Under the pieces are notes generated by a model, which saw nothing but the letters and a program-made list of their open reading frames with translations, was not told the DNA's origin and searched no databases. A stretch of 64,000 bases of DNA from Obrimoposthia wandeli (Eukaryota): NCBI GenBank assembly GCA_977020255.1, contig CDROCS010002866.1:372001-436000 (forward strand), in the 5' to 3' direction. Of the stretch, positions 8,600 to 52,203 are shown piece after piece (within the stretch, counting starts at the first letter, position 1; each line of letters starts with the position of its first letter). Both the position numbers and the translations under genes were made by a program.

Positions 8600-9001
8600 C
8601 TAGTTGTATTGTGCGTTTGAAAAAATCTCTCTAATTTGCGGGGTAAACCGAGTCGGTTTCATATTCTTTGCATTGACACATACGACTTCTATCTGTGCTG
8701 CGCATAGTAGTTTGTTACTGTGTACTTGCTGTGTAAAAGTGACACTAGCTGCTGCGTATTTTTCAACGGCCACCGTTACACGTAGCTGATCATCTAATTT
8801 AGCCGGAGCTCGATAATCACAAGTAACTGATTTAACCACAAACAGATATCCTTGTTCTTTTAATGTTTTTTGCTCTAACCCATTTGTCCTTAATAGTTCG
8901 GTACGCGCACGTTCCATATACTTTAAGTAATTCACATAATAAACAATACCGCCAATGTCGGTATCTTCTATATACACTGTGATGGGAAATTCAAACACCA
9001 T
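8600..9001 (-). CDS. ybgC: Tol-Pal-associated acyl-CoA thioesterase YbgC
   Basis: VYIEDTDIGGIVYYVNYLKYMERARTE hot-dog motif; first gene of the tol operon. Confidence 0.93.
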   Translation of the reverse strand: MVFEFPITVYIEDTDIGGIVYYVNYLKYMERARTELLRTNGLEQKTLKEQGYLFVVKSVTCDYRAPAKLDDQLRVTVAVEKYAAASVTFTQQVHSNKLLCAAQIEVVCVNAKNMKPTRFTPQIREIFSNAQYN

Positions 9002-9318
9002 TAATTTTGAACCTGTAATTATTTAACGCGTAGCTAAGTGAATTCAGCCCTTTTAGCACATATTGGCAACACTACATTTTCTTGTATACAGTTATTTTTG
9101 AACTGATTTTAACCACCTTGCTGCACTATTTGAATAGCTAATTGTATTTTTTTTACAACAAACAGACATTTAGCATTCAAATAAGTTCGCAGTTGTGTCT
9201 TTTAAACAGCTTTACTAAGCAATTTCAGCTATTTCTGCATAAAATTTAAACAAATTCATTCATTTTAACCCATTAAACTCTTCTTCAAACAAACTCAATG
9301 TTTAGAAGACAACAAAAT

Positions 9319-9332
9319 TTGATTTTAATCAA
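9319..9332. promoter_or_regulatory. FNR/ANR-box-like palindrome between ruvB and ybgC
   Basis: TTGAT-TTTA-ATCAA, exact consensus match, but in AT-rich DNA and about 320 bp from ybgC. Confidence 0.3.
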
Positions 9333-9339
9333 AAAGGTG

Positions 9340-10359
9340 TTATAGGTTTTTATCAGGTACTTCTAAGCCAAAATGTAAATAAGCATGGTTAGTCACCACC
9401 CGCCCTCTTGGGGTACGCATAATAAAGCCTTGTTGAATTAAATAAGGCTCTAATACATCTTCAATCGTTTCACGTTCTTCACTAATCGCCGCTGCCAAAT
9501 TATCAACGCCAACCGGACCACCCCCGAATTTTTCTATCATGGTGAGTAATAAACGCCTATCCATATGATCAAAGCCTTTATCATCCACACTGAGCATGTT
9601 CAATGCTTTATCTGCAATAGTGGCGCTAATGACACCATCCGCCTTGACTTCGGCATAGTCTCGGGCACGGCGTAACAGCTTATTAGCAATACGCGGTGTG
9701 CCACGGCTGCGCATGGCAACTTCCCTGGCTCCCGCTGAATCAATTTTAGTACCCGACAATCCCGCTGAGCGCTCTACGATATATGCAAGGTCATCAATAC
9801 TATAAAATTCAAGTCGTTGAACAATGCCAAATCGATCTCTTAAAGGCGAAGTTAAGGATCCCGCTCTTGTCGTAGCACCGACTAAAGTAAAAGGAGGTAA
9901 ATCAAGCTTGATCGAGCGTGCAGCTGGACCTTCGCCTATCATTATGTCCAACTGATAATCTTCCATTGCGGGGTAAAGAATTTCTTCAACATTTGGGCTT
10001 AAGCGATGTATTTCATCAATAAACAATACATCCCCTGCTTCTAAATTGGTCAGCAGGGCAGCTAAGTCTCCAGCGCGTTCTAAGATAGGCCCTGAAGTAG
10101 TTTTTATTTCTGAATTCATTTCAGTAGCAATGATATTTGCCAAGGTGGTTTTACCTAAACCAGGGGGGCCAAAAATCAACGTGTGATCCAAAGCTTCTCC
10201 ACGTGCACGTGCAGCTTGGATAAATATTTCCATCTGCTCACGTACTACAGGTTGACCTTGATATTCGTCTAATGTGTGAGGCCTTATAGCTCTGTCTTGA
10301 ACCTCTTCAATCGTGCTTTTCTCTGCAACAGCTGAGACAAAGCGATCTGCTTCTATCAT
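9340..10359 (-). CDS. ruvB: Holliday junction branch migration ATPase RuvB
   Basis: GPPGLGKTT Walker [25 protein letters not shown]. Confidence 0.97.
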
Positions 10360-12326: not shown

Positions 12327-14576
12327 TTATTTAACCTGATCACTTGTATTAATTTTTTGTAGGGTATCACATTGAAGCAATTTAAATAGCTCGCTAGCTG
12401 GAACGGGTTTGTTAAATAAATAGCCTTGTATTATGTGACAACCAAGAGACTTCACAAACGCTAACTGCTCTTCGTTTTCGATTCCTTCAGCCACTATTGT
12501 GAGGTTTAAGCTGTGACTAAGCCCAGCAATCGCTTTAGCGATAGCTACACAATTTTCGTTGTGTGGGACATTTTCGATAAAGGATTTGTCAATCTTTAAT
12601 GTATCTACTGATAGACGGTGCAGATAGCTTAAAGAAGAGTAACCGGTGCCAAAATCATCTATGGCTAAGGTTATCCCAAGATCAATCAACCCCTGTAATG
12701 TTTCGGCGCTAGAACTATCCTGCTGAACTAATAAACTTTCGGTAATTTCAAGCTCAAGTCGATTATGAGGAAGCTTTCGACTATCGAGTGCTTGGCGCAC
12801 AGCTACAGGAAGGGTTTTATCCTTTATTTGATGACTGGATATATTTACCGCCATACAAAGGTGATCCCAACCGTTTTGATGCCAAAGAGCAAGCTGATCA
12901 CAAGCTTGTTCTAGCACCCAAAGACCTACAGGTACAATAAGGCCTGTCTCTTCTAGACTGGGAATAAAATTGTCTGGCGGAATTAATACTCCTTGTTCCG
13001 GTTGCCAGCGAAGAAGTGCTTCGACGCCACATATCTTGCCTGTTTTAGCGTTATGCTGAGGTTGAAAATATACAATAAATTCATTATTTTTAAGAGCATT
13101 TCTCAATTGGTTTTCAATGTGCAATTTAGACTCTGAAAACTTATTCATCTTTTCAGAGTAAAAGGCAAATTTATCTCTCCCCATATCTTTTGCTCTGTAC
13201 ATAGCTATATCTGAATTTTTCAGCAAATCCTCAGCATCAAGACCGTCATCTGGATATATTGAGATACCGATGCTAATGGTCGCGTGTAAGGGAGTGCTCT
13301 CTATAACGTATGGGGCGCGTATGGCACTCAGAATTTTTTCAGCAACATTAATAATATCGGTATTGTTACGAATATCCTCCAGTACGATAATAAACTCATC
13401 ACCGCCGTGGCGAGTTAGCGTGTCCTCGCCGCGAATGCAGCTCTTTAACCGAGCAGCGACCCTTATCAGAAATAAATCCCCCATAGTGTGACCCAAAGTA
13501 TCATTGATAACTTTAAAACGATCAATATCTAGAAACAATATGGCGGCTTTTTTCTGGTATCTTTTAGCATGTGAAACGGTTTGGTTAATACGCTCTTGTA
13601 ATGTTGTCCGGTTGGCTAAACCAGTTAAGGGATCATGTTGAGCCAAGTAGCGCATGGCAGTTTCTGCCTGTTGACGTTCATTAACTGCCGCAGCCAAAAC
13701 CATACTGGTGATGGCTATAACATTACTATAAAGCCATAGCAAGGCCAGGCTTTCAAATTCAGTACCTTGGGCGAACAAACCAAAACCTAACATTATATTG
13801 AACAGGAGAACGGCACCTATAATAAAGGTGGAGGCTGTTGCCCCTTTCATACCGAATGTTAATGTGCTCCAAATAATGATAGGAAAGGTTAAGAACGCTA
13901 GTGGTAGGAGTCGGTCATCACTTAAATAGTTATTTCCAAAAATAAGCTCTGAGATAACGACAAGTGAAAAGCCTACTCCTATAATTTGCGGCGTGATTGT
14001 CCAATGAAATGCTTTACCCGGCTGGGGCCACCAAGAAAATAATAGTGCTGCAAACACTAGATTACCCATAGCGTCGCCCATCCACCATGCAAGCCACGTA
14101 AAGTAAACGTCGTTCCATGGAATAATCTCCCAGCTAGCTAAGGTAATAACACCCAAGGTTGCACTGATGGTAGTACTAATGCCTGCTGCAAGCAGAACTA
14201 AACTAAAAACATCTTTAACACGAGGAAGTGAGTAATCAAATTTAATAAGCTTAAGTAGGTAGTAGCCTGCGATCGCTTCGAGAGTGTTTCCTGTGGCAAT
14301 AGATATCGAGGGACCTACCACAAGACCCGAGTCTAAATTAGTGATGAAGGCGCCAATAAATACCCAAGGACAAAGACGAAGGCCAAACCTAACCAGGCAA
14401 AACAGTGCTATCCCGGTAGGAGGCCAAATCAACGTTACATTACTTGTGGTTACAGCAAATTCAAGGCCTAGCTTTCCAGACATGTAGTAGGCGATCGATA
14501 GTAGAAGACCGCTGATGATATATTTTATATTAATTGTAGTCCTAAAACTTACTAAGTGGCTATCAGAATCATTCAA
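12327..14576 (-). CDS. MASE1-GGDEF-EAL diguanylate cyclase/phosphodiesterase
   Basis: Multi-TM MASE1 N-terminus (IWPPTGIAL); RGED I-site five residues before GGDEF; VEALLRW and DDFGTGYSSL. Confidence 0.93.
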   Translation of the reverse strand: MNDSDSHLVSFRTTINIKYIISGLLLSIAYYMSGKLGLEFAVTTSNVTLIWPPTGIALFCLVRFGLRLCPWVFIGAFITNLDSGLVVGPSISIATGNTLEAIAGYYLLKLIKFDYSLPRVKDVFSLVLLAAGISTTISATLGVITLASWEIIPWNDVYFTWLAWWMGDAMGNLVFAALLFSWWPQPGKAFHWTITPQIIGVGFSLVVISELIFGNNYLSDDRLLPLAFLTFPIIIWSTLTFGMKGATASTFIIGAVLLFNIMLGFGLFAQGTEFESLALLWLYSNVIAITSMVLAAAVNERQQAETAMRYLAQHDPLTGLANRTTLQERINQTVSHAKRYQKKAAILFLDIDRFKVINDTLGHTMGDLFLIRVAARLKSCIRGEDTLTRHGGDEFIIVLEDIRNNTDIINVAEKILSAIRAPYVIESTPLHATISIGISIYPDDGLDAEDLLKNSDIAMYRAKDMGRDKFAFYSEKMNKFSESKLHIENQLRNALKNNEFIVYFQPQHNAKTGKICGVEALLRWQPEQGVLIPPDNFIPSLEETGLIVPVGLWVLEQACDQLALWHQNGWDHLCMAVNISSHQIKDKTLPVAVRQALDSRKLPHNRLELEITESLLVQQDSSSAETLQGLIDLGITLAIDDFGTGYSSLSYLHRLSVDTLKIDKSFIENVPHNENCVAIAKAIAGLSHSLNLTIVAEGIENEEQLAFVKSLGCHIIQGYLFNKPVPASELFKLLQCDTLQKINTSDQVK

Positions 14577-15512: not shown

Positions 15513-16520
15513 ATGAAAAAAAATACCTTTCTATGTTTGGCTTCACTGCAAATTGCATTGCTAGCCTCTCCTTTACTTCTAGCCAGCGATGATACTAAAC
15601 CGACATTAACGGTTTACACCTACGATTCATTCATTTCTGACTGGGGCCCTGGCCCGAAAATCAAAGCTGCATTTGAAAAAGATTGTAACTGCCAGCTCAA
15701 CCTTATTGCAGAAGAAGATGGTGTTAGCATTTTAAACCGCCTCAAAATAGAAGGTAAAAAGGCCAAAGCTGATGTCATTTTAGGTTTAGATCACGCTTTA
15801 ATAAAAGAAGCTAAAAAAACAGGCCTGATTGCAACGCACCAACAGGATTTTTCTACGCTCAAACCTAGTTTAAATTGGACTGACGATAGTTTTGTACCCT
15901 ATGATTTTGGCTACTTTGCATTTATTTATGACAGCACTAAAATAAGCAAACCGGTTAGCTCACTTAAAGAACTAGTCAATTCTGACGCTTCAGTAATATA
16001 CCAAGATCCACGCACTAGTACTCCAGGGCAAGGGCTAATGTTTTGGATGAACTCAGTTTATAAAGATGATACTGCTAAAGCTTGGAAACAATTAGCGAGC
16101 CACACCCAAACGGTAACTAAAGGCTGGTATGAAGGTTATAGCATGTTCCTAAAAGGCGGTGCTGATTATGTATTAAGCTATACCACTTCACCGGCTTATC
16201 ACATGATTGCTGAATCTGAGAACAAATACCAAGCGGCACAGTTTAGCGAAGGGCACATTGCTCAAGTTGAAGTAGCAGCTGCACTTAACACCAGCAAGCA
16301 CCCTGTACTAGCCCAATCATTCTTGAATTTTTTGATCAGCGATCAAGCGCAGCAAATTTTACCTGTAACTAATTGGATGCTACCGGTTGTTAAAGATGTC
16401 ACTTTGCCTGAACAATTTGGCAAGTTAATTAGCCCTGCACCTATTGCAATGGACATAGAAAAGCTAGCAGATATGCGTAAAGACTGGATAAAAGTTTGGC
16501 GCTCAAGTGCTGTTAAATAG
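15513..16520 (+). CDS. thiB: Thiamine ABC transporter substrate-binding protein ThiB
   Basis: LTVYTYDSFISDWGPGP, DPRTSTPG, LSYTTSPAYH. Confidence 0.94.
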   Translation: MKKNTFLCLASLQIALLASPLLLASDDTKPTLTVYTYDSFISDWGPGPKIKAAFEKDCNCQLNLIAEEDGVSILNRLKIEGKKAKADVILGLDHALIKEAKKTGLIATHQQDFSTLKPSLNWTDDSFVPYDFGYFAFIYDSTKISKPVSSLKELVNSDASVIYQDPRTSTPGQGLMFWMNSVYKDDTAKAWKQLASHTQTVTKGWYEGYSMFLKGGADYVLSYTTSPAYHMIAESENKYQAAQFSEGHIAQVEVAAALNTSKHPVLAQSFLNFLISDQAQQILPVTNWMLPVVKDVTLPEQFGKLISPAPIAMDIEKLADMRKDWIKVWRSSAVK

Positions 16521-16670
16521 CTTAATATTAAGTAGCTGTCATTCAATTATTGTTATTCAATAATTAGCATAAATCTTAATAAAACCAACAATTGTTAACT
16601 CAGCACTGAGATTGTATTGTTAATCAGTGCTGTTTTCTTGAAAAGTACTATTATTCGTTACATGTTAAAT

Positions 16671-16824
16671 CATTACTGCCCGGTTAAAAAATGTAAGCCC
16701 TCTAACTCATTGATTTGTGGTTTTCTGCTATGGTTAGATCTATATTTTTCGCGCGAAATGATATTTCTCGTTAACGTAAAATCAATAAGCCAGAGAGCAA
16801 CAAAAATTAAACCGGACAGGAATG
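16671..16824. mobile_element. IS4-like MITE, family 1, copy a (154 bp)
   Basis: TIRs CATTACTGCCCGGTT / AACCGGACAGGAATG; decayed 9-bp flanks ATGTTAAAT / ATTCTAATT; interior matches copies at 45214, 51190, 51905. Confidence 0.8.
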
Positions 16825-18387
16825 ATTCTAATTAAACTAAGTAATCTCAGCGGGCTGTTTTTCATCGCCTTAATTAGCTTCATTACACTGCTCGCGTTTT
16901 ATGGCTTAATTGCCTTTAATCGCCAGGGCGCTGATTTATCGTTGCTGCAAGACCCCTACTTTCATGCCATTTTAATATTTTCCATTAAACAGGCATTACT
17001 CAGTGCTTTTTTAGCCACCTTTTTAGCTTGGCCGATTGCGCGCGCTATTTATTATTACCCTAAAATTTTCCTGAAAAGCACTTTTTTAAGTTTGGCATTA
17101 CTGTGTTTTGTATTACCCACATTGGTGTTAATTACCGGCTTTGTTTCACTGTTTGGCTTATCCGGCATTATCACCCCTTTTCTAGGTGATGATTGGAGCT
17201 TATATGGAATACAGGGGATTTTAATTGCGCATGTCTACATGAACCTGCCCTTTGCTGTGCGTGCACTACACAATCAATTACAGAACATTCCCGACTCAAG
17301 CTGGATACTATCAAGACAGCTCAAATTTAATGCCTTACAAAGATTTACTTTAATTGAATGGCCGGCACTACGCGCCACTATCAGCTTAACTTTTGGCTTC
17401 ATTGTTATCTTGTGTTTTAACAGTTTTGCCGTAGTATTAGCATTAGGGGGAGGGCCACAAGCGACCACTTTAGAAGTCGCTATTTACCAAGCGCTTAAAT
17501 ACGATTTCAATATTTCAGAAGCACTGACATTAGCATGGACTCAATTTTTTATTGCCGGTGTCTTCTTTGTTGCTTTATACCGCTCTAGCGGTGTTTCATG
17601 GCTTTCTAAAGAATCGTCTACAAAGCTGTGGCTCCCAGCAATTTCTAAGACAAATAAAGCGCTATTTCTAGCCCTTTATTGCAGCTGTTTTATTTTTATG
17701 TTGCTCCCTTTACTATCATTATTACCCGGTGTTTTTGCTGCCAATTATACCAGTAGCTTGCTGATAAATGTTGGCCAATCCCTTGCTTTATCATTACTGT
17801 TAGGGCTTTTAGCGGCGCTAAGCGCCATGTTAATTGCCTACTTCATTATGTTGCCTATTCGCCACTGTAACATCTTTAAAAAGCAGCGTTTACAAAACAC
17901 TTTGCAATGGCTGGCTAATCACACGTTAATAGCGCCGGCAATGGTATTAAGCGTCGGTTTATATATCCTCTTTTTACCCATAATTGATCTCGATCGCCTA
18001 GGCATGTTTTTCGTGGTCATCTTAAATGTGTTATTAATTTTACCTTTTGCAATGCAACAAATAAGAGCGCGTGTCATCCAATACGACAGCGATTATGCAG
18101 CCTTATACCTATCGTTGAAATTAAATTTTTGGCAAAAATTTACCATAGAATGGCCCTATATTAAGCCGACTATACTTAGCACTTTTTCTTTGGTTTTGTT
18201 AATTGCGATGGGCGATGTCGCTATATTTTCAATTTTTGGCAGTGATCATCTCAAAACCTTACCTTGGTTAATATATCAATATGCTGGCAGCTATCGATTA
18301 AATGAAGCGTCATTTGCTTCAGCCGTATTGTTGGTCGTTTATTTATTGGTTTTATTTAATATCGAAAGAGTAAAAAAGCATGCTTGA
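16822..18387 (+). CDS. thiP: Thiamine ABC transporter permease ThiP
   Basis: Duplicated permease halves, LAHV-like IAHVYMNLPFA, GGGPQATTLEVAIYQAL; between thiB and thiQ. Confidence 0.92.
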   Translation: MILIKLSNLSGLFFIALISFITLLAFYGLIAFNRQGADLSLLQDPYFHAILIFSIKQALLSAFLATFLAWPIARAIYYYPKIFLKSTFLSLALLCFVLPTLVLITGFVSLFGLSGIITPFLGDDWSLYGIQGILIAHVYMNLPFAVRALHNQLQNIPDSSWILSRQLKFNALQRFTLIEWPALRATISLTFGFIVILCFNSFAVVLALGGGPQATTLEVAIYQALKYDFNISEALTLAWTQFFIAGVFFVALYRSSGVSWLSKESSTKLWLPAISKTNKALFLALYCSCFIFMLLPLLSLLPGVFAANYTSSLLINVGQSLALSLLLGLLAALSAMLIAYFIMLPIRHCNIFKKQRLQNTLQWLANHTLIAPAMVLSVGLYILFLPIIDLDRLGMFFVVILNVLLILPFAMQQIRARVIQYDSDYAALYLSLKLNFWQKFTIEWPYIKPTILSTFSLVLLIAMGDVAIFSIFGSDHLKTLPWLIYQYAGSYRLNEASFASAVLLVVYLLVLFNIERVKKHA

Positions 18388-18976
18388 TATCAATCAGCTT
18401 AGTATCCAATTAGGGACCCAAACCTTAAGTTACCACCAGCAAATTAAAAGCGGCGATATAGTCACTTTACAAGGGATTAGCGGCGTGGGAAAAAGTAGCT
18501 TATTGCTGTGTATTAGTGGTTTTATACCAACGATTTCTGGCAGCATTCACTGGCAGGGCCAGGCAATAAATCACCTACCTATTGAACAGCGCCCCGTGGC
18601 AATGCTGTTTCAGGAAAATAATTTATTCGAACATATAAGCGTGCTAAAAAACGCCTGCTTAAGTATTTCAGCTGAAAATGCCAGTAATATATATCAGCAT
18701 GCAGAGCAGCTTAATATTTCAGATCAAATGCATAAAATGCCTAATCAACTGTCTGGCGGACAACGCCAAAGAGTTGGCTTACTAAGAACGCTGCTAAGAC
18801 CAGAACCCATCATATTATTAGATGAGCCTTTTGCAGAATTAGATAATAAAACACGAGAAATTTGTGCAGATTGGCTAGCATCTATCGCTAAAAGTACCCA
18901 TAAAACAGTACTATTGGTCACTCATCAGCTAGAAGACGTGGAAAAATTAGCCGACCATAATTGGCTGATTGGCTAA
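18380..18976 (+). CDS. thiQ: Thiamine ABC transporter ATPase ThiQ
   Basis: GISGVGKS, LSGGQRQR, LLDEPF; overlaps thiP stop. Confidence 0.88.
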   Translation: MLDINQLSIQLGTQTLSYHQQIKSGDIVTLQGISGVGKSSLLLCISGFIPTISGSIHWQGQAINHLPIEQRPVAMLFQENNLFEHISVLKNACLSISAENASNIYQHAEQLNISDQMHKMPNQLSGGQRQRVGLLRTLLRPEPIILLDEPFAELDNKTREICADWLASIAKSTHKTVLLVTHQLEDVEKLADHNWLIG

Positions 18977-41308: not shown

Positions 41309-42121
41309 ATGCTAATTCGCATATTGCTTGTCATAACTTTTATTGTTAACTGTGCCATTCGTTTCAAAGGTCCTTGGCGATATTTTCAAATCAATTCACT
41401 ACATTTTAATGATGAATTGGGCATTTATTCGAAAGACGACATAGATAGTAATATCCCCAACACTTGGAGGCTTCCACAAGCTGTCGATGATGGATTGTAT
41501 ATTCCCGAAACATTCCCAGTCTTTGTTAAACCTGAGTGGGGTCAAAACGGCCAAGGTGTACGCCGAGCAGATAATGCCAATGAGTTAGATTATATTCGTA
41601 ATCACTGTATGAACCCTAAAACAGTGTATGTGATTCAGCAAGCAGCGACACCAAAGCGAGAATTTGAAATATTCTATATTCGTGATTATCGAAACCTAAA
41701 TAATTTTGCAACGATGAGCATCACTGAAACTTGTAATACCAGTGATGAAGACCTTCCGGTAAATAGTATTAATAACCAGCATACTTATTACAATTCAGTG
41801 ACTCAAAAATTAAGCTCACAAGAATTGGATAACGTTTGGAAAAGCATTGGCAACATCGGTCAATATAACTTTGCTCGAGTAGGCGTGCGTGCGGATTCAC
41901 TAGAAGCACTACAAAAGGGTGACTTTAAAGTAATAGAAATTAACTTATATCTACCTATGCCAATTAACTTGATGGATAACGCTTTACCTTTTAGAGAAAA
42001 GTTTAAATTCATTAAAATCAGCATGCTTCATTTAGCTAAGTTAGTGAATACCATTCCTGATACTCAGCAAAGTAAATCGGTGTTTATCAAAAAAACCCTT
42101 TTCCAACCAAGAACCAAGTGA
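41309..42121 (+). CDS. Divergent ATP-grasp-fold protein
   Basis: FPVFVKPEWGQNGQGV, YVIQQ, EFEIFY, FKVIEIN motifs in ATP-grasp order. Confidence 0.72.
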   Translation: MLIRILLVITFIVNCAIRFKGPWRYFQINSLHFNDELGIYSKDDIDSNIPNTWRLPQAVDDGLYIPETFPVFVKPEWGQNGQGVRRADNANELDYIRNHCMNPKTVYVIQQAATPKREFEIFYIRDYRNLNNFATMSITETCNTSDEDLPVNSINNQHTYYNSVTQKLSSQELDNVWKSIGNIGQYNFARVGVRADSLEALQKGDFKVIEINLYLPMPINLMDNALPFREKFKFIKISMLHLAKLVNTIPDTQQSKSVFIKKTLFQPRTK

Positions 42122-43038
42122 GACCTGTCATGTTATCTTTTAAACGTCGTATCTACGCTGCTATTAGCAAAAAATTCATGAACGATTGCAGTAGCTATAA
42201 TTCGCTAGAAGTAAGACGAGGCTGCCGGTCAAAGAAACAAGCCAGAGCCATTTTTGCAGCGCATGAAGTACCACACGCACAAGGTGACATTATTTTTGGA
42301 CCATTTGCTGCACGTGATTTTGCAAAAAAACATGGATTCCCTCTAGTGATTAAGCCTAATGTTAGTGGCTTTTCAAGAGGAAGCTACTTTCCAATTAACA
42401 ATTATAAAGAACTTTATAAAGCGCTTTTTTTAGCAAAAATCTGGTGGCCAACAACCGTTATTGAACAGTACTTGCAAGGTAAAAATTATCGCGTTGTGGT
42501 GATTGACGGCGAGATAATGTCAGCGATTGAACGCTTTCCGCCAACGGTCGTTGGCAATGGGGTAGATAGCATACGACAGCTCGCTAAAACGGAAAACGAA
42601 ATTCGTGAAGAAATGGGCTTGTTTCCAACTATTCACCCTATTTTAGAAACGGATCAAACCATCAAACACTTAGCAAAACAAGGGCTCTCTTTTGATTCAA
42701 TCCCTGCTAAGGATGAATCTGTCACATTATTTTATCGTATAGCATTAGCACCGGGTGGCACAGTACATACTATTGATAAAGCGACTATCCCGGATGAAAA
42801 CAAAGCACTATTCCTAAAAGTATTAAAAATGTTCAACGCTAACATTCTTGGCATTGATATTATTATGGAGCAAGGCATTGATGTACCTCATGATCAACAA
42901 AAATGCATCATGCTCGAAGTAAATTCAAGACCTTACCTCAAAATGCATGACGTGCCTCGTCAAGGTAATAGAGAGGATCTAAGTCAATATTATCAAAAGT
43001 TAGATAATCTAAACATTTCTCAATCGGATACCTTCTAA
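42118..43038 (+). CDS. Stand-alone ATP-grasp ligase related to the cyanophycin synthetase / GshF ligase domain
   Basis: FPLVIKP, EQYLQGKNYRVVV, PPTVVGNG, GIDII, LEVNSRP; no Mur-ligase domain. Confidence 0.85.
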   Translation: MRPVMLSFKRRIYAAISKKFMNDCSSYNSLEVRRGCRSKKQARAIFAAHEVPHAQGDIIFGPFAARDFAKKHGFPLVIKPNVSGFSRGSYFPINNYKELYKALFLAKIWWPTTVIEQYLQGKNYRVVVIDGEIMSAIERFPPTVVGNGVDSIRQLAKTENEIREEMGLFPTIHPILETDQTIKHLAKQGLSFDSIPAKDESVTLFYRIALAPGGTVHTIDKATIPDENKALFLKVLKMFNANILGIDIIMEQGIDVPHDQQKCIMLEVNSRPYLKMHDVPRQGNREDLSQYYQKLDNLNISQSDTF

Positions 43039-43044
43039 ATACTA

Positions 43045-44241
43045 ATGATCACCGTTTCAGCCAAAGTGCAACAACGACAATTTTATTTGTTTGTCTGTAG
43101 TCACTCCTTTTTAATCGGCCTATTTCCTTTTTTCCTCCCTGTTTACCTTTTCAAACAGGGATTAGGAATGGGTGAGATCTGTTTCTTCATTGCCACCAGC
43201 GCTGTTACCTTTAGCAGTGGCATGTATTTATGGGATCATGTAAAAGCAAAACTGCGCCCTACTCAACTGTTAGCGCTGTGCTATATCTTAGAATTATTAC
43301 TCATTACTAGCGTTATTTACGCAGCACCAAAAATTACCCATCAGCCCACTTATGCTTATATCATTGCCGCGTGCTATGGTTTGTACCAATGCTTTTTTTG
43401 GACCACGCAAAGAGCGCTCTTTGTACAGCGCAGTGGCAGTAATAACACTGGAACGCGCTACGGAAACTTTCAAATATTTGTAGTAGTGTTTTTAAAAATA
43501 GGTGTTTTTATTGGCGGTCTATTATTAGAAAGCCAAAATCTAAATTTACTATTTATTATTTCACTCATTAGCATCGTTGCCAGCTATACAGCACTCAACT
43601 TTATTCCCGGCAAGCTAGAATGGCCTTTTTTACAGTGGCCAACCGTCAGTATTACTAAGATTATACGCTTTAAAGATAACTATCGTTCCAAACAAATTTT
43701 TGCTTTAGATGGCTTATTCTTATTTGTTGAAAGCTTCTTCTGGTTGCTATCGCTGTTCTTAATTTTAAAGCAAAGTTTTATGCAATTAGGCTTAATGATA
43801 ATAGCAATTACGCTCATGCTTTCATTGGTCTTTTTCTTACTCAAGAACAAAATTGATCGACTCCCTGAGCAATTAATTTACAGCATTTCTATTGTAGGGT
43901 ACGGGATATCATGGATATTAAGAGCAAACTTAGATGAAGAATTATCGTTGTCCTATCAATTTATTTTCCTTTGTTTCATCGCTTTCTTAACTGCATTATT
44001 TAGATTGGCGTTTAATAAACGTTTCTACGATTTGGCAGTGTTCTACCCTAAAACACCCTACATTTTAATGAAAAGTTACTATTCGCAAGTCGCACTTATC
44101 ATCTCGTTTGCAGTGTTGGGTGTGATTTTTATGAATGTAACTACTTTAACCGCGCTCAATTCTGGGTACTGGTTAGCAGCTGTATTAACCCCTTTGTACT
44201 TTATTTATAGAACAAGGGCCGTAGTGAAGAAAAATGCTTAA
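43045..44241 (+). CDS. MFS-type transporter
   Basis: About 12 hydrophobic segments, 398 aa, 6 nt after the ligase stop. Confidence 0.8.
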   Translation: MITVSAKVQQRQFYLFVCSHSFLIGLFPFFLPVYLFKQGLGMGEICFFIATSAVTFSSGMYLWDHVKAKLRPTQLLALCYILELLLITSVIYAAPKITHQPTYAYIIAACYGLYQCFFWTTQRALFVQRSGSNNTGTRYGNFQIFVVVFLKIGVFIGGLLLESQNLNLLFIISLISIVASYTALNFIPGKLEWPFLQWPTVSITKIIRFKDNYRSKQIFALDGLFLFVESFFWLLSLFLILKQSFMQLGLMIIAITLMLSLVFFLLKNKIDRLPEQLIYSISIVGYGISWILRANLDEELSLSYQFIFLCFIAFLTALFRLAFNKRFYDLAVFYPKTPYILMKSYYSQVALIISFAVLGVIFMNVTTLTALNSGYWLAAVLTPLYFIYRTRAVVKKNA

Positions 44242-44377: not shown

Positions 44378-45163
44378 CTAAATAGATAAGCTATCTGCCC
44401 TCTTGACGCTTTTATGTTCCTGCTCTGTTATTCCTTGTTTCCAATAGCTACTGGCATAAACACTGCGCCGTGGTATTTGTAAGTCTTGATAAATGTATGT
44501 ACGTAGTAAGCGCATCTTATCGAATTCGCAAGCAAGCCAAACACTCCCACTTCCTGCTAATTTTGGCAGTGATTTTACGGTATCAACTAATACAGATGAT
44601 TTAGAAGTAGCAGTACTCACAACCCAAATTAATTTAACACCACTAGGTACTGCTAAATCTTGCTTATCGCTTTCATGCAGTATTTCTATAACGGCATAGC
44701 CTTGTACCGTTTCGGAAAGCGAACTTAAATTTACACTAATAGCGGGAAGTGCTGTCATATCACCAATGATTAGCACCCAATCCGCCGTTGCATCCACTGA
44801 TTTTTTCTTACCAGGCCCTGCTACATAAATTTCACTGCCAATTTCGCTATTTAACGCCCAACTAGAAGCAGGCCCTGTATCATGCATTACAAAATCTATA
44901 TCTATTTGTTTTGGGTCTTGTCTTTGATTGCGCACTGTATAAGTACGCAATACTGGACGTTGTTCAGTATCTTCACTTTGTATTTGCGCAAGTACATTTT
45001 CGTTAAGCACACCCTTACTGGCAAAGTGAAGTTTAATATAACCGCCTTCTTGTTCATCTGGGAAAGTCTTTAAATCATCACCACTCAAGGTAATGCGCAT
45101 CATGTTATTGGTTATCTGTTGTTTACTTACTACTTCCAATTTCCTAGGTAATGCCCTGCTCAT
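44378..45163 (-). CDS. Siderophore-interacting protein (ViuB/YqjH-like ferric reductase)
   Basis: RTYTVR, GPASSWA, GDMTALPAI, ACEF, SSYWK. Confidence 0.92.
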   Translation of the reverse strand: MSRALPRKLEVVSKQQITNNMMRITLSGDDLKTFPDEQEGGYIKLHFASKGVLNENVLAQIQSEDTEQRPVLRTYTVRNQRQDPKQIDIDFVMHDTGPASSWALNSEIGSEIYVAGPGKKKSVDATADWVLIIGDMTALPAISVNLSSLSETVQGYAVIEILHESDKQDLAVPSGVKLIWVVSTATSKSSVLVDTVKSLPKLAGSGSVWLACEFDKMRLLRTYIYQDLQIPRRSVYASSYWKQGITEQEHKSVKRADSLSI

Positions 45164-45213
45164 ATGAATTCCTCTTTACTGCTTTGGTTTACTGCTAATT
45201 TACAATCTGTTGT

Positions 45214-45300
45214 CATTGCTGTCCGGTTAAAAAGTGTAAGCTCTTTACTCATTAATTTGTGGTTTTATAACATAGTTAATTGGGATTTTTCAGACAAATA
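45214..45300. mobile_element. IS4-like MITE, family 1, copy b (partial)
   Basis: CATTGCTGTCCGGTTAAAAAGTGTAAG...CAGACAAAT matches the left about 90 bp of the family; right TIR not clearly recognisable. Confidence 0.6.
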
Positions 45301-45404
45301 TTTCTTGTTGTTAGCAATCACATTACTCAATGTTGTTGTGTTTTAGTTCTGGTTTTAGCTATGTTTTCTAATACATAACTGTTAATCGGTACCACTAATA
45401 ATAG

Positions 45405-46469
45405 CTAGAAATTAACCCGTTCTATTATGTCTATCGCCTTTTGATGGTTCATTGCTATATCTGATAATGCTGCATTGTCTTGTTTGAACCTAGGCATATA
45501 TTTTTTAAGTAAACTTGAAGGCTCTATATCTTCTTTCACAGGAAATTCATGATTTTGTTGCGCATAGAGATACTGTGCTCTACTGCTACTCAAATACTCC
45601 ATTAGTTTTATCGCGCTATCTTTATGCGGAGCATTTTTGGTTAAGGCAATCCCACTGATGTTCATATGGCTGCCACGACCACTTTGATTAGGAAAGATTA
45701 AATTTACTGATTCAGCCCAAACTATCTGTTCAGGTTTACGCTTATTGGTGATCATTTTTGCGAAATAGTAAGAGTTGACCAGTGCAACATCGCAAACGCC
45801 TTCGTTAATCGCTTTGACTTGAGCGCGATCATTACCTTGAGGTTTGCGTGCCAAGTTAGCTTTAATTGCAATGAGCCATTTTTCTGTAAACGCTTCACCT
45901 TTTGCTAAAATAATAGAACTTATTAATGAGAGCATGTAATTGTGCTTAGCTGAGCGAGCACAAATTCTACCGCGCCATTTTTTAGCCATTAAATCTTCAT
46001 AGCTTTGAATTTCACTAACGTCGACTCTATCTTTGGCAGCATAGATAATTCTTGCTCTAGAGGTGATACCAAACCACAAACCTTGAGGATCACGATACTG
46101 TATCGGGATGTTATTATTAATAATTTCGTTTTCTACTTGCTGCGTTAAACCGCGTTGTGCCATTTCGTATAATGGCGCCACATCTGAGGTTAAAACTAAA
46201 TCCGCTGTCGAAAGATCGCCTTCTTTTATTAAATGTTTAACTATATTTTTATTCGAATAAACAATATTAACCACGATACCTGTTTGTTCAGTAAAATCCT
46301 CTAAAATAGATTCAATTAAAAAAGGCTGCCTTGCAGAATAAACGTTGACTTCCGCTGCTACTAGATAAGTACTTTGTATACTTACAACCATTAATAAGTG
46401 CCATTTAAAGTTGTTCAAAAGTCGATGGGTTAACTTTATTGTTGTTGTGATCCATTTATTAAAATTCAC
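45405..46469 (-). CDS. Fe(3+) ABC transporter substrate-binding protein (FutA/FbpA-like), no permease or ATPase adjacent
   Basis: VNVYSARQ, RARIIY, GNDRAQVKAI, NSYY (paired Tyr iron ligands), HMNISG. Confidence 0.92.
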   Translation of the reverse strand: MNFNKWITTTIKLTHRLLNNFKWHLLMVVSIQSTYLVAAEVNVYSARQPFLIESILEDFTEQTGIVVNIVYSNKNIVKHLIKEGDLSTADLVLTSDVAPLYEMAQRGLTQQVENEIINNNIPIQYRDPQGLWFGITSRARIIYAAKDRVDVSEIQSYEDLMAKKWRGRICARSAKHNYMLSLISSIILAKGEAFTEKWLIAIKANLARKPQGNDRAQVKAINEGVCDVALVNSYYFAKMITNKRKPEQIVWAESVNLIFPNQSGRGSHMNISGIALTKNAPHKDSAIKLMEYLSSSRAQYLYAQQNHEFPVKEDIEPSSLLKKYMPRFKQDNAALSDIAMNHQKAIDIIERVNF

Positions 46470-46600
46470 TGCTAAAACCTAGTTAATGTATTTTATTTAA
46501 AGATGATTGAGCGAAACCCTCCAATGCAAGCCAGCCTCTTTTTCCTTTCGTGCTTGCTATTGAATTCTACTCAGCTCGAGATAAAAGCTGATAAGCTTTG

Positions 46601-49351
46601 TTATTTCGAATCAGAAGAGCTATTACTGCTAAGTTTTTTAATTCCTTTTTTGGTGATGCGTGCAATCGCTTGATCTAGCGCTAAAGGCTTATCATACAAA
46701 TAACCTTGTGCGTATTTACACCCTAAAACACTAAAGAAATCCTGTTGATATTTTTCCTCAACACCTTCAGCGGTCACTTGTAATCCAAGTAAATCAGCCA
46801 TTCTCACCGTCGCTTCTAAAACAATGGCATTATTACTTTGCAATTTCAGCGCATTGACAAAAGAGCGATCTAATTTAATACCTTCTAAAGGGTAGTTAAC
46901 TAATCTTTCTAGGGAGCTATGCCCTGTTCCAAAATCATCTATGTAGATACCTACACCTACCGCATGAATACGCTTTAACTGCTGCATTAATGTCTCTTCT
47001 CCGGTATATATTTCAGTTTCTGTCACTTCCACGTGAATATTTTTTGGCGATAGCTTAAGTTTATTTAATTGCAACTCTAATAAAGAAGCTATATCAGAAA
47101 AAATAAATTGCTTAGGGGATACATTAATATTGAGAAACAACTCAGAGTTGCCTGAAGCAGTTATAAATTCTGCAGCTTTTGCACAAGCTTGTTCTATAAT
47201 CCAATTCCCTAAAGCAGAGATGATATTTAAATCTTCTAAGATAGGGATAAACTCAGTAGGCGAAACCTCTCCAACCTCTGGATGACACCAACGAACCAAT
47301 GCCTCGAAACCGGCTATTTTTAAGCGTTTCAAATCCATGATCGGCTGATACACCAGATAAAACTGATTGTTAGTGATGCTTTCATTAAGTAGTGATTCTA
47401 GCTTTAAGCGCCGCTCAAATTGCAAGCTCAATTGATGATCATAGATCGCAATATTATTACGCCCTTGCTGCTTAACTTCGTACATAGCTAGATCAGCTTG
47501 CTGTAGAGCTTGGGTTGAGCCTTTACAGTCTCTGGTCAGTAAGCTACCCCCGATACTTGCAGTCACCGTCAACTGATCTTGCCTCGCTAAAGTAAAACTT
47601 GGTTGAATCGTTGCTCTTAAGCGTTGGGATAATTCCTGCAAATGATATTTGTCAGTAACGCCATCTAAAAAGATAGCAAATTCATCTCCACCAAATCTAG
47701 CAACTTGGCAGTGATCAAAACGATCACTTATGCGCTTGGCAAATTTCACTAAAAGCTCATCACCCGCCATATGACCAAAGCTATCATTGATTGATTTAAA
47801 GCGATCAATATCAATAAAGAACACCGCGAAGTGACCTTCATTTTCATATTCTATTTTATGATCAATATAAGTGACGAATGAAGCACGATTTCTTAATCCT
47901 GTTAAGGCATCGTATTGCGCTTGATATTGGAGTTTTAGCTCGGCATTTTTGCGCGCAGAGATAATACTAATATAACCTTGGTAGTGACTGGCAACCCCTT
48001 CATCATCAGTTATCAGGTATGCATTCTCAAGTAACCAAACAGATTGCTTATCGCTAGTAACGCCCAACCATTCAAAATTATTTACTTGGCCTTTTGATAA
48101 CAACGTGTCCATAAATTGCTGATAGCTAGTGTGATCAGCATGCAATTGATGTTTTATGTCTTTTATTTGTCTACATATATCAGCATCATCTTGATAATTA
48201 AAAGCTTTTGAGAATGCCGGGTTTACTTTAAGTAGCTCTCCGTGCAAATTCGCCGTGTAAAGCCCATCAATAGATTGCATAAATAGATTACTGTAATCTG
48301 CTGTAACGTCTTCTAAATGTTCTTGCTTTATGCGTATTAAATATTCAACTTTTAAAGAATGCTTTCTTGAAACATAAATATAAAACAAACAGCAAAAAAG
48401 GGCGATAACAAAAGCTAAAGTTGCAAATTGGCTAGCACTAACAAAATAGTTCACACCATGTTTATCAATGTCATAAAAATTGAACACTAGCTTTTCGCCT
48501 GCAAAATCATAGTTCATTGTCCAATAATTACTCAGCTGTTGATTACATAAACGCGCATCTACAGCTTCCAATTGCGAATGATAAATTTTTAAGCTTTTAG
48601 CACTTTTTTGAATCTTATCTACTCTTAAACACAAGTTTAAATCTTCTAAACCTTTGCCAACTAAAATATTGATCGCTTCCTCAAAATTAAAAGAAACCCC
48701 TACAAAGCCTAATAAATCGGCATACAACAAATTATCACCACTGTAGGCAGCGAGTAGAAATCGCGAGCGAGGTATTTGTTCAATACTACTTTGGGGTGTT
48801 ATCGCTAACTGCACATTTGTGGCTTTATGCGCCTTAATTAACAAAGGCGCAAAATAATCATCTTGTGCCAAATTATTACCTAATGTAAAACCTTCCATCT
48901 GGCTCGATGAGCTATATTTAATAGGAAACACGTCTTTAATATTTCTGTTTTGTAATTGCGCGTTATAGTTACTGTTGAAATTGAATTGTCCCGTGCTTTT
49001 TATATCTGCAATCCAGTTATTGAGGCTATGCGTTGCTACTTTGGGAATCCATTCGAATGCACCTATTCCGTAATCTGCGATAGGTTGCGAGGATATAAAG
49101 TAATCAAACTCACGCTGCGTTAAGTTAGGGTTTAACTCTATTAAACTGCGTAGTGATTGCAACAAGGACGTTAACTCACTAAATGCCGACTGTACTTTCT
49201 GAAATTGGGTTTGCGCTCTATTTTGCACAGAGCGCTGTTTCTCTCTTTGCTCTAAAGTGGTGAGTGCATAAAAAAAACCTAAAATACACGGCAGTAATAG
49301 TATTGATACCAACAGTGTAAAAACGATAGGAGATAGCTTTTGTTTGAACAT
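46601..49351 (-). CDS. CHASE-PAS-GGDEF-EAL c-di-GMP enzyme
   Basis: Two TMs flanking a CHASE-like region (AFEWIPKV, LGNNL), PAS (LLKVNPAF), ARFGGDEF, FEALVRW, DDFGTGHSSL. Confidence 0.92.
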   Translation of the reverse strand: MFKQKLSPIVFTLLVSILLLPCILGFFYALTTLEQREKQRSVQNRAQTQFQKVQSAFSELTSLLQSLRSLIELNPNLTQREFDYFISSQPIADYGIGAFEWIPKVATHSLNNWIADIKSTGQFNFNSNYNAQLQNRNIKDVFPIKYSSSSQMEGFTLGNNLAQDDYFAPLLIKAHKATNVQLAITPQSSIEQIPRSRFLLAAYSGDNLLYADLLGFVGVSFNFEEAINILVGKGLEDLNLCLRVDKIQKSAKSLKIYHSQLEAVDARLCNQQLSNYWTMNYDFAGEKLVFNFYDIDKHGVNYFVSASQFATLAFVIALFCCLFYIYVSRKHSLKVEYLIRIKQEHLEDVTADYSNLFMQSIDGLYTANLHGELLKVNPAFSKAFNYQDDADICRQIKDIKHQLHADHTSYQQFMDTLLSKGQVNNFEWLGVTSDKQSVWLLENAYLITDDEGVASHYQGYISIISARKNAELKLQYQAQYDALTGLRNRASFVTYIDHKIEYENEGHFAVFFIDIDRFKSINDSFGHMAGDELLVKFAKRISDRFDHCQVARFGGDEFAIFLDGVTDKYHLQELSQRLRATIQPSFTLARQDQLTVTASIGGSLLTRDCKGSTQALQQADLAMYEVKQQGRNNIAIYDHQLSLQFERRLKLESLLNESITNNQFYLVYQPIMDLKRLKIAGFEALVRWCHPEVGEVSPTEFIPILEDLNIISALGNWIIEQACAKAAEFITASGNSELFLNINVSPKQFIFSDIASLLELQLNKLKLSPKNIHVEVTETEIYTGEETLMQQLKRIHAVGVGIYIDDFGTGHSSLERLVNYPLEGIKLDRSFVNALKLQSNNAIVLEATVRMADLLGLQVTAEGVEEKYQQDFFSVLGCKYAQGYLYDKPLALDQAIARITKKGIKKLSSNSSSDSK

Positions 49352-49387
49352 CTATACAACAACTTCAATAATTTCACTAATAATTAC

Positions 49388-49412
49388 ATTAATAGTAATC
49401 ATTATCATTAGC
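49388..49412. promoter_or_regulatory. Fur-box-like site upstream of the CHASE-PAS-GGDEF-EAL gene
   Basis: ATTAATAGTAATCATTATC 15/19 to GATAATGATAATCATTATC, plus an overlapping 14/19 match 6 nt along; 37 nt from the ATG. Confidence 0.6.
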
Positions 49413-49534
49413 TTTGTCATTAACATTTGATAGTTAAATTTATAACACCTTCAATTTCTCGGTAAAGCTCTGGAACTTAACCCTAAAAACCTGTATTTTT
49501 TGTCTTCTCTTTTATTATATAAGTTTGATACCTA

Positions 49535-51125: not shown

Positions 51126-51189
51126 TTTTAACCTCGAAAATTAAGTTTCTTTAAACCTATTCATGGAACAAGCTGTTGGTATCACTAAT

Positions 51190-51341
51190 CATTGCTTTCC
51201 GGTTTAAAAGTGTAAACTTTCTAACTCATTTACTTGCGGTTTTCTAACATAGTTAATTGTTTTTTTTCAGAAAAATGACACTTGTGCTTAACGTAAAATC
51301 AATGCGTTAAAGAACAACAAAAATTAAACAGGACACTAATC
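51190..51341. mobile_element. IS4-like MITE, family 1, copy c (152 bp)
   Basis: Degenerate TIRs CATTGCTTTCCGGTT / AACAGGACACTAATC with a perfect 9-bp duplication ATCACTAAT (51181-51189, 51342-51350). Confidence 0.82.
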
Positions 51342-51904: not shown

Positions 51905-52203
51905 CTTTACTGTCCGGTTAAAAAGCATAAGCTCTCTAACTCATTGATTTGTGGTTTTCTAGCATAGTTAATTGGATTTTTTTCAGCCAAATGATACTTT
52001 TGGTTAACGTAAAATCAATGAGCTAAAGAACAAATAATGATCCCCGGGGCAAGCCCTCTCACTTAGGCTCGACTTCACTTCCTGAAGCGGGGTATTCCTA
52101 GTGACTATTGGTGCTAACAAGTTCACGCCCTAAAGGCCGGGGAATTAGACCCTTGATGATTTAGGCTCCGCCTGATTCATCTCTATTAAACCGGACAGTA
52201 ATG
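51905..52203. mobile_element. IS4-like MITE, family 1, copy d, carrying a nested family 2 element
   Basis: TIRs CTTTACTGTCCGGTT / AACCGGACAGTAATG; 9-bp duplication ATGCCCGAT / ATGCCTGAT. Confidence 0.87.
52035..52189. mobile_element. Hairpin-ended non-autonomous element, family 2 (IS200/IS605-derived, PATE/REP-like), copy 1
   Basis: About 93% identical to 53212-53366; no TIR; hairpins CCCCGGGG-CAAGCCC.. and CGCCCT-AA-AGGCCG; TAA on both sides. Confidence 0.72.

Follow-up and report, generated by a model that had tools for sequence, protein, structure and literature searches.

We analysed 64,000 nucleotides (nt) of DNA, positions 372,001 to 436,000 of contig CDROCS010002866.1 (assembly GCA_977020255.1, listed under Obrimoposthia wandeli). 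This whole stretch is called the window. Its DNA is bacterial and Oceanospirillaceae-like. On its minus strand, positions 44378-49351 hold three co-oriented open reading frames (ORFs), as seen in an ORF check of the window. The first two may form an iron-sensing signalling module that acts through cyclic di-GMP (c-di-GMP). The first gene (46601-49351, minus strand) encodes a membrane protein of 916 amino acids with the Pfam domains CHASE-PAS-GGDEF-EAL, here called the sensor. The second (45405-46469, minus strand) encodes a paralog of the class III FbpA-type Fe3+-binding proteins, which has 354 amino acids and is predicted to be periplasmic. The third (44378-45163, minus strand) encodes a flavin reductase of 261 amino acids, assigned by Pfam to the SIP/ViuB type of siderophore-interacting proteins (SIP).

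The sensor and binding-protein genes are separated by 131 nt (46470-46600, minus strand), and the binding-protein and SIP genes by 241 nt (45164-45404, minus strand). A terminator-like site, a Fur-like box and an Rfam match are all absent from the 131-nt spacer and from the 241-nt spacer. On the 5' side of the sensor gene lies a prephenate dehydratase gene in divergent orientation. A phased array of Fur-box-like hexamers is located at 49388-49424 on the minus strand and ends 36-37 nt 5' of the sensor ATG. It contains two overlapping matches of 15/19 to the 19-mer Fur consensus, at 49388 and 49394, and weaker ones in 6-nt phase at 49400 and 49406. The first two are the only matches of at least 15/19 in the whole window. 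An earlier interpretation made from the letters of this DNA (the sequence-only reading) had described three genes in the same direction behind a double Fur-like box, 37 nt before the first gene. Both observations hold: the three genes lie on the minus strand where it had placed them, and the double box corresponds to the two overlapping matches, which are the best in the 64 kb.

Sensor and binding-protein genes in related loci

The sensor gene is followed directly by the FbpA-like gene at around 14 distinct loci in genomes of Nitrincolaceae/Oceanospirillaceae and in metagenomes, and the flanks of these loci are unrelated. The count takes in every sensor locus with enough flanking sequence. The loci with the pair are the window, L001/L009, L002, L003, L007, L008, L010-L014, L016, L021, L022/23/28/29/32, L025/26 and L035. 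Since the flanking genes differ between lineages, the pair moves or persists as a unit. The gap between the two genes in orthologous loci ranges from a 4-nt overlap (L016) through 11-21 nt (L003, L007, L008) up to approximately 230 nt. Conserved adjacency was a check suggested with the sequence-only reading, and the two genes are indeed adjacent in every related locus with enough flank.

The binding-protein relatives with at least 62% identity that were looked up (L001, L002, L003, L007, L008) are all encoded directly after a CHASE-PAS-GGDEF-EAL gene. The same is true of L016, the most divergent member from the binding-protein search. At 55-58% identity, the three relatives looked up belong to fbpA-fbpB-fbpC loci (Amphritea japonica, Microbulbifer and a 5.8-Mb assembly). 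For the periplasmic domain of the sensor, a word-based search gave eight close relatives, and an exhaustive profile search gave four representative clusters at an expectation value (E) of ≤1e-73. Species-representative genomes contain seven sensor loci, all in metagenome-assembled genomes (MAGs) of Oceanospirillaceae/Nitrincolaceae, one of them an Osedax symbiont. The FbpA-like gene is immediately downstream in all seven. A metagenome scan yielded further paired loci (L022, L023, L025, L026, L028, L029, L032 and L035), and a divergent sensor from a metagenome (L021, 40% identical) is again followed by an FbpA-like gene. So far, the pair is restricted to a few marine lineages. Second-tier CHASE-GGDEF-EAL relatives (33-37% identity; profile E of 1e-36 to 1e-41) have no binding-protein gene nearby (L017-L020, L030, L033, L034).

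In one Nitrincolaceae MAG (L015, 8001-8900), a deletion joins sensor residue ~175 to binding-protein residue ~235, and the remainder contains stop codons. This is either a joint decay of the pair or an assembly fault. The SIP gene downstream is intact in L015.

The product of the SIP gene matches FAD_binding_9 (E 1.9e-30) and the SIP C-terminal domain (E 5.3e-32) in Pfam, and has no NCBIfam equivalog match. The gene comes after the pair in the window, L001/L009, L002, L013, L015, L025 and L026 and is absent from the other loci. As it is missing from most loci, we rejected it as a member of the core module. The siderophore reductase had been counted as a part of the module in the sequence-only reading, which the presence of the gene in only some loci does not bear out. 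The conserved unit, as read from the compared loci, is the Fur-like box, the sensor enzyme and the binding protein, without SIP. Just 5' of the pair, L007 (798-4417) and L008 (1159-4630) carry a membrane reductase of the Ferric_reduct/FAD_binding_8 type and an OmpR-type two-component system. A SIP or Ferric_reduct gene is thus often found beside the pair, which fits the theme of iron.

No transporter for the binding protein was found near the pair. Using FbpB from Amphritea japonica, tblastn gave no match in the 64-kb window. With FbpC, the sole match in the window (35%) is ThiQ of thiBPQ, and no Fe3+ ATPase was detected there. No FbpB or FbpC was found within 6-8 kb of any pair locus. The earlier description of a binding protein without permease or ATPase is thereby confirmed for the 64-kb window and for 6-8 kb around each related locus. 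The ABC transporter at 15513-18976 (plus strand) has Pfam families in common with FbpA systems and was considered as a partner. It was rejected, being a thiamine transporter (thiBPQ) with a binding protein unrelated to the paralog. This operon is complete. ThiB scores above the NCBIfam equivalog cut-off, and the ThiQ ORF is short (198 amino acids).

These loci could also be explained if the paralog were an extra high-affinity carrier of Fe3+ for an FbpBC encoded elsewhere. The adjacency would then come from a shared Fur regulon, and the CHASE domain would sense a small ligand of its own. The paralog does keep all ligand residues of the transport type, and it is 55-60% identical to the FbpAs of fbpABC loci. 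Shared regulation, however, does not explain a strict adjacency in the same order at ~14 loci with unrelated flanks, with reading frames that overlap or abut. Nor does it explain the joint decay in L015 or the separate clade formed by the paralogs (see below). Other genes of the Fur regulon, SIP among them, are present at some loci and missing from others, and the pair remains. We consider this explanation unlikely.

The binding protein and its predicted ligands

The binding protein matches SBP_bac_6/8/11/1 in Pfam. The nearest solved relative is FbpA from Mannheimia haemolytica (PDB ID: 1Q35; E 4e-91), and a further match is the protein from Moraxella catarrhalis (PDB ID: 7LI0; E 1.7e-62), with the full mature length covered. 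In class III FbpA, three tyrosine residues bind Fe3+, and two arginine residues of the N-lobe bind the synergistic carbonate (PMC10182148). We placed the ligand positions by alignment to 1Q35. Among the sequences that cover these columns, 16-17 sensor-linked ones and 104 others, there is no variation at R47, R138, Y178, Y234 or Y235. The similarity to class III FbpA (1Q35/1SI0, 7LI0) extends over the whole mature protein, and the three tyrosines and two arginines are identical here. Unlike class III FbpA, the paralog is never found with FbpB/FbpC, is always encoded after the gene for a c-di-GMP enzyme and belongs to a separate clade. Similarity, ligand residues and encoding together with an FbpB permease and an FbpC ATPase mark a class III FbpA; the paralog shows the first two and not the third.

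The leader of the binding protein ends in LVA/AE. Leaders in the family are long and variable and close with a hydrophobic segment and a site resembling Ala-X-Ala, after which comes the conserved EVNIYS. These features are consistent with export of the protein.

A maximum-likelihood tree groups the sensor-linked proteins in a single clade of 17 rows, with a Shimodaira-Hasegawa-like approximate likelihood ratio test (SH-aLRT) value of 100. The clade stands apart from 53 other FbpAs, of which three are confirmed in fbpABC loci. Only one position, V231, discriminates the clade strictly, and 24 more do so at looser thresholds. Some of the clade-specific changes lie beside the ligands. A174 (from G), N177 and M179 (from N) flank Y178, and V231 (from G) precedes N-S-Y-Y. 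Others affect charged positions that are conserved in transport FbpAs (K66V, E78K, D102Q, H189A, E194F). The L021 protein (8876-9919) is of the transport type at nearly all clade-discriminating positions, yet it has V231 as in the paralog clade. This may be a case of convergence next to the Tyr-Tyr iron ligands.

Two further explanations depend on these residues. The paralog might have a dual role, delivering Fe3+ to FbpBC and also reporting its loading state to the CHASE domain, in the way that maltose- and galactose-binding proteins work with chemoreceptors. The conserved ligand residues and the modest divergence from transport FbpAs, with a single strictly clade-specific position, would agree with this, and binding proteins with both roles are known (PMC8050422). 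The same review states that dual-role binding proteins are usually encoded with the transporter and signalling partners with signalling genes, whereas the gene of the paralog is never found with a transporter. The five changes at charged positions, moreover, suggest a changed docking surface. On balance, a dual role seems improbable to us.

Alternatively, the paralog could sense something other than free Fe3+-carbonate, such as chelated ferric iron, a different metal or a different synergistic anion. This would be supported by the clade-specific substitutions directly beside the ligands (174, 177, 179 and 231), with V231 occurring also in the independently placed L021 protein. Against this, the three tyrosines and two arginines are invariant. 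Iron is also indicated by the Fur-like box, which is conserved, and by the ferric reductase genes next to the pair (SIP in several loci; Ferric_reduct in L007 and L008). We judge a different ligand to be very unlikely.

The sensor enzyme and the Fur-like box

Pfam finds CHASE (26.3 bits; cut-off 25), PAS_9, GGDEF (131 bits) and EAL (217 bits) in the sensor. Its predicted layout consists of a first transmembrane helix (~7-30), a periplasmic CHASE domain (~31-305), a second transmembrane helix (~306-328), PAS (362-456), GGDEF (478-633) and EAL (655-889). Two hydrophobic segments (~7-30 and ~304-330) bracket the predicted periplasmic part. All orthologs keep the catalytic motifs of the two domains intact, among them GGDEF, EAL and DDFGTG. 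The enzyme is probably bifunctional, like MbaA, ScrC and DcpA.

The score of the CHASE domain is marginal. We modelled residues 1-340 of the sensor with AlphaFold2 (predicted local distance difference test, pLDDT, of 86). The model has two PAS-like subdomains and a long stalk helix. When it was compared with the PDB (Foldseek), the CHASE domains of Arabidopsis AHK4 (PDB IDs: 3T4K/3T4S) and Xanthomonas PcrK (PDB ID: 6K62) gave the best matches, with E ~1e-10. The template-modelling score is up to 0.76 on the target, and the sequence identity is only 11-14%. These fold matches indicate that the marginal Pfam call is right and that the sensor domain, as modelled, is a true CHASE fold.

The sensor shares the fold and the Pfam CHASE match with AHK4, a plant cytokinin receptor, and with PcrK. 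In AHK4 and PcrK the CHASE domain binds cytokinins directly and the output is a histidine kinase, whereas the output here is GGDEF-EAL. Direct binding of small molecules by these two domains would suit the view that the paralog only carries Fe3+ for a distant FbpBC while CHASE senses a ligand of its own. Ligands are known for only a minority of bacterial CHASE domains.

The Fur-like box was compared with shuffled sequences and with related loci. A score of 15 was reached in 0.35% of shuffles of the 70-nt stretch 5' of the sensor gene. The box overlaps a sigma-70 promoter-like site, ATGACA-17 nt-TACTAT, at 49392-49420 on the minus strand (9/12 match to the consensus); promoter-like sites in this 5' region are no commoner than in shuffles. 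A Fur-like box is found 14-42 nt 5' of the sensor start codon in 11/11 orthologous loci, with scores of 12-17 of 19. In 8/11 of these loci, shuffles match the score of the box less than 5% of the time, and the box is weak in some. The divergent locus L021 has a 16/19 box before the sensor gene, which brings the scanned loci with a box to 12/12. A consensus box that lies over a promoter-like site and is kept in orthologs would place the pair in the Fur regulon.

Fur-like boxes of 15-16/19 are also present before second-tier CHASE-GGDEF-EAL genes without a binding protein (L017, L034, L036). Iron regulation therefore appears to be older and wider than the pairing, and the wider CHASE-GGDEF-EAL family may be iron-regulated. 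Relatives without a binding protein may have a different means of sensing iron, in which the housekeeping FbpA could perhaps act as a co-receptor. Such boxes are also in line with the view that adjacency reflects a common regulon and that the paralog serves transport. Further Fur-box-like sites were seen upstream of the CHASE-GGDEF-EAL gene in L019, L030 and L033.

The surroundings of the locus were also inspected. Beyond the SIP gene lies a convergent operon with two ATP-grasp ligases and an MFS transporter (41309-44241, plus strand), and this synteny is kept in L001. An ATP-grasp and MFS pair is also present near the second-tier CHASE-GGDEF-EAL gene of L020 (1-2094), possibly by coincidence. 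The window contains another c-di-GMP gene, encoding a MASE1-GGDEF-EAL protein of 749 amino acids (12327-14576, minus strand). A repeat of ~90 nt inside the spacer between the binding-protein and SIP genes enlarges it to 241 nt, as against 75 nt in the closest relative, L001. The window has four copies of this intergenic repeat, all in plus orientation (45213-45299, 16670-16724, 51189-51276 and 51910-51975). Three of them are outside the locus, ~100-230 nt 5' of plus-strand genes. The copy in the spacer is antisense to the operon and is not present in L001. No significant RNA fold was found for the repeat, which may be a promoter or regulator-site module.

Comparison with NspS-MbaA and a proposed mechanism

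Binding proteins that are encoded beside GGDEF-EAL receptors and control them are described in two reviews (PMC8050422, PMC13492106). The examples are NspS-MbaA of Vibrio cholerae, which responds to polyamines, ScrB-ScrC and PruR-DcpA. In these pairs, whether the enzyme makes or degrades c-di-GMP is set by the ligand state of the binding protein (PMC8050422, PMC13492106).

As in NspS-MbaA, the locus lacks a transporter, and the binding-protein gene adjoins the gene of a GGDEF-EAL enzyme with two transmembrane helices and both domains intact. The locus shows several features of this type: the two genes are co-oriented and stay adjacent across genomes, neither a permease nor an ATPase is encoded with them, the predicted periplasmic domain is framed by two transmembrane helices, and GGDEF and EAL are both intact. 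The sensor domain of MbaA has been described as dCache-like, with a double PAS-like fold related to CHASE, and the sensor here has CHASE followed by PAS. Unlike in NspS-MbaA, the binding protein is a paralog of FbpA (ferric ion) and not a PotD-type polyamine binder, the sensor gene comes first, and a Fur-like box is present. As there is no homology to NspS (PotD-like) or to the sensor domain of MbaA, the pair would be an analogue and not a member of that family.

The separate clade, the conserved adjacency, the invariant ligands and the conserved Fur-like box strongly support, at the level of sequence, a binding protein tied to a CHASE-GGDEF-EAL enzyme. We lean towards the view that the CHASE-PAS-GGDEF-EAL enzyme and its dedicated FbpA paralog are a two-gene iron-sensing signalling module and an iron analogue of NspS-MbaA. 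The likeness to NspS-MbaA had been put forward in the sequence-only reading. That idea gains support from the conserved pairing without a transporter, the clade, the ligands and the conservation of the Fur-like box. SIP falls outside the conserved module.

In the mechanism that we propose, iron starvation would relieve the repression by Fur at the box, which lies over the promoter-like site, and the two proteins would be produced. The exported binding protein would take up Fe3+ with carbonate through its three tyrosines and two arginines, as its transport-type relatives do. Either the iron-free (open) or the iron-loaded (closed) form would then dock on the CHASE domain and tip the enzyme towards making or towards degrading c-di-GMP. 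Starved cells could in this way read the periplasmic supply of iron and set attachment against motility. We infer Fur control, co-transcription, Fe3+ binding, docking on CHASE and the sign of the response. The more specific proposal that a transport protein underwent duplication and was turned into a periplasmic sensor dedicated to iron, with the FbpA paralog, Fe3+-loaded or not, docking on CHASE to set c-di-GMP, is tentative, and we place it slightly short of even.

Several observations weigh against such a module. The gene spacing in the window, 131 and 241 nt, makes separate promoters possible. The binding protein of L021 falls outside the paralog clade and groups with P0071 among the other, transport-type FbpAs. 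A single origin of all sensor-linked binding proteins, including that of L021, was marginally rejected (approximately unbiased, AU, test, p 0.037). The L021 protein may have branched off early, at a point that the tree fails to resolve, or it may stem from a second recruitment. The changes at A174, N177, M179 and V231, close to the predicted ligands, could alter what is bound. Fur-like boxes in relatives without a binding protein imply an iron regulation that does not depend on the binding protein, and CHASE might have a sensing role of its own. In favour of a functional pair, a correlation of distances over 11 pairs shows that the binding protein tracks the periplasmic domain best (r of 0.94; partial r of 0.66 for the periplasmic domain given the cytoplasmic part, and −0.34 for the converse); the pairs are non-independent, so this mirror-tree signal is supporting evidence only.

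Another known link between iron and c-di-GMP is IsmP-ImcA of Pseudomonas aeruginosa, in which, as summarised in PMC13492106, Fe3+ binds directly to the CHASE4 domain of IsmP and acts via a partner cyclase. The module proposed here would resemble it in that a membrane-bound c-di-GMP protein responds, through a sensor domain of the CHASE kind, to Fe3+ in the periplasm. Unlike IsmP-ImcA, which has CHASE4 and no binding protein, the present pair has a CHASE domain of the type found in AHK4 and PcrK, and its candidate iron binder is a dedicated FbpA paralog.

Full-text literature searches brought up no paper in which a protein of the FbpA type is connected with a GGDEF/EAL enzyme. In its passages on GGDEF/EAL receptors, a 2021 review of signalling binding proteins names only MbaA-NspS and ScrC-ScrB (PMC8050422). 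In a 2026 review on metals and c-di-GMP, an action of metal-binding solute-binding proteins on such enzymes is raised only as a prospect for the future (PMC13492106). If the proposed module is real, it would be the first example of the class of mechanism that this review names only as a possibility, and its binding protein would be the first known case of a metal-binding solute-binding protein in control of a GGDEF-EAL enzyme. It would also be a clean case of a transport-protein paralog recruited to signalling, and a bacterial CHASE domain would gain a protein partner that is open to direct test.

The carriers of the module are marine Nitrincolaceae/Oceanospirillaceae, including symbionts of bone worms (Osedax). 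Iron limits growth over much of the ocean. A line from periplasmic Fe3+ to c-di-GMP would, if confirmed, explain how these bacteria choose between staying on iron-bearing particles and hosts and leaving them. If the housekeeping FbpA serves as a co-receptor in the wider family, the coupling of iron to c-di-GMP would be far more widespread than this clade.

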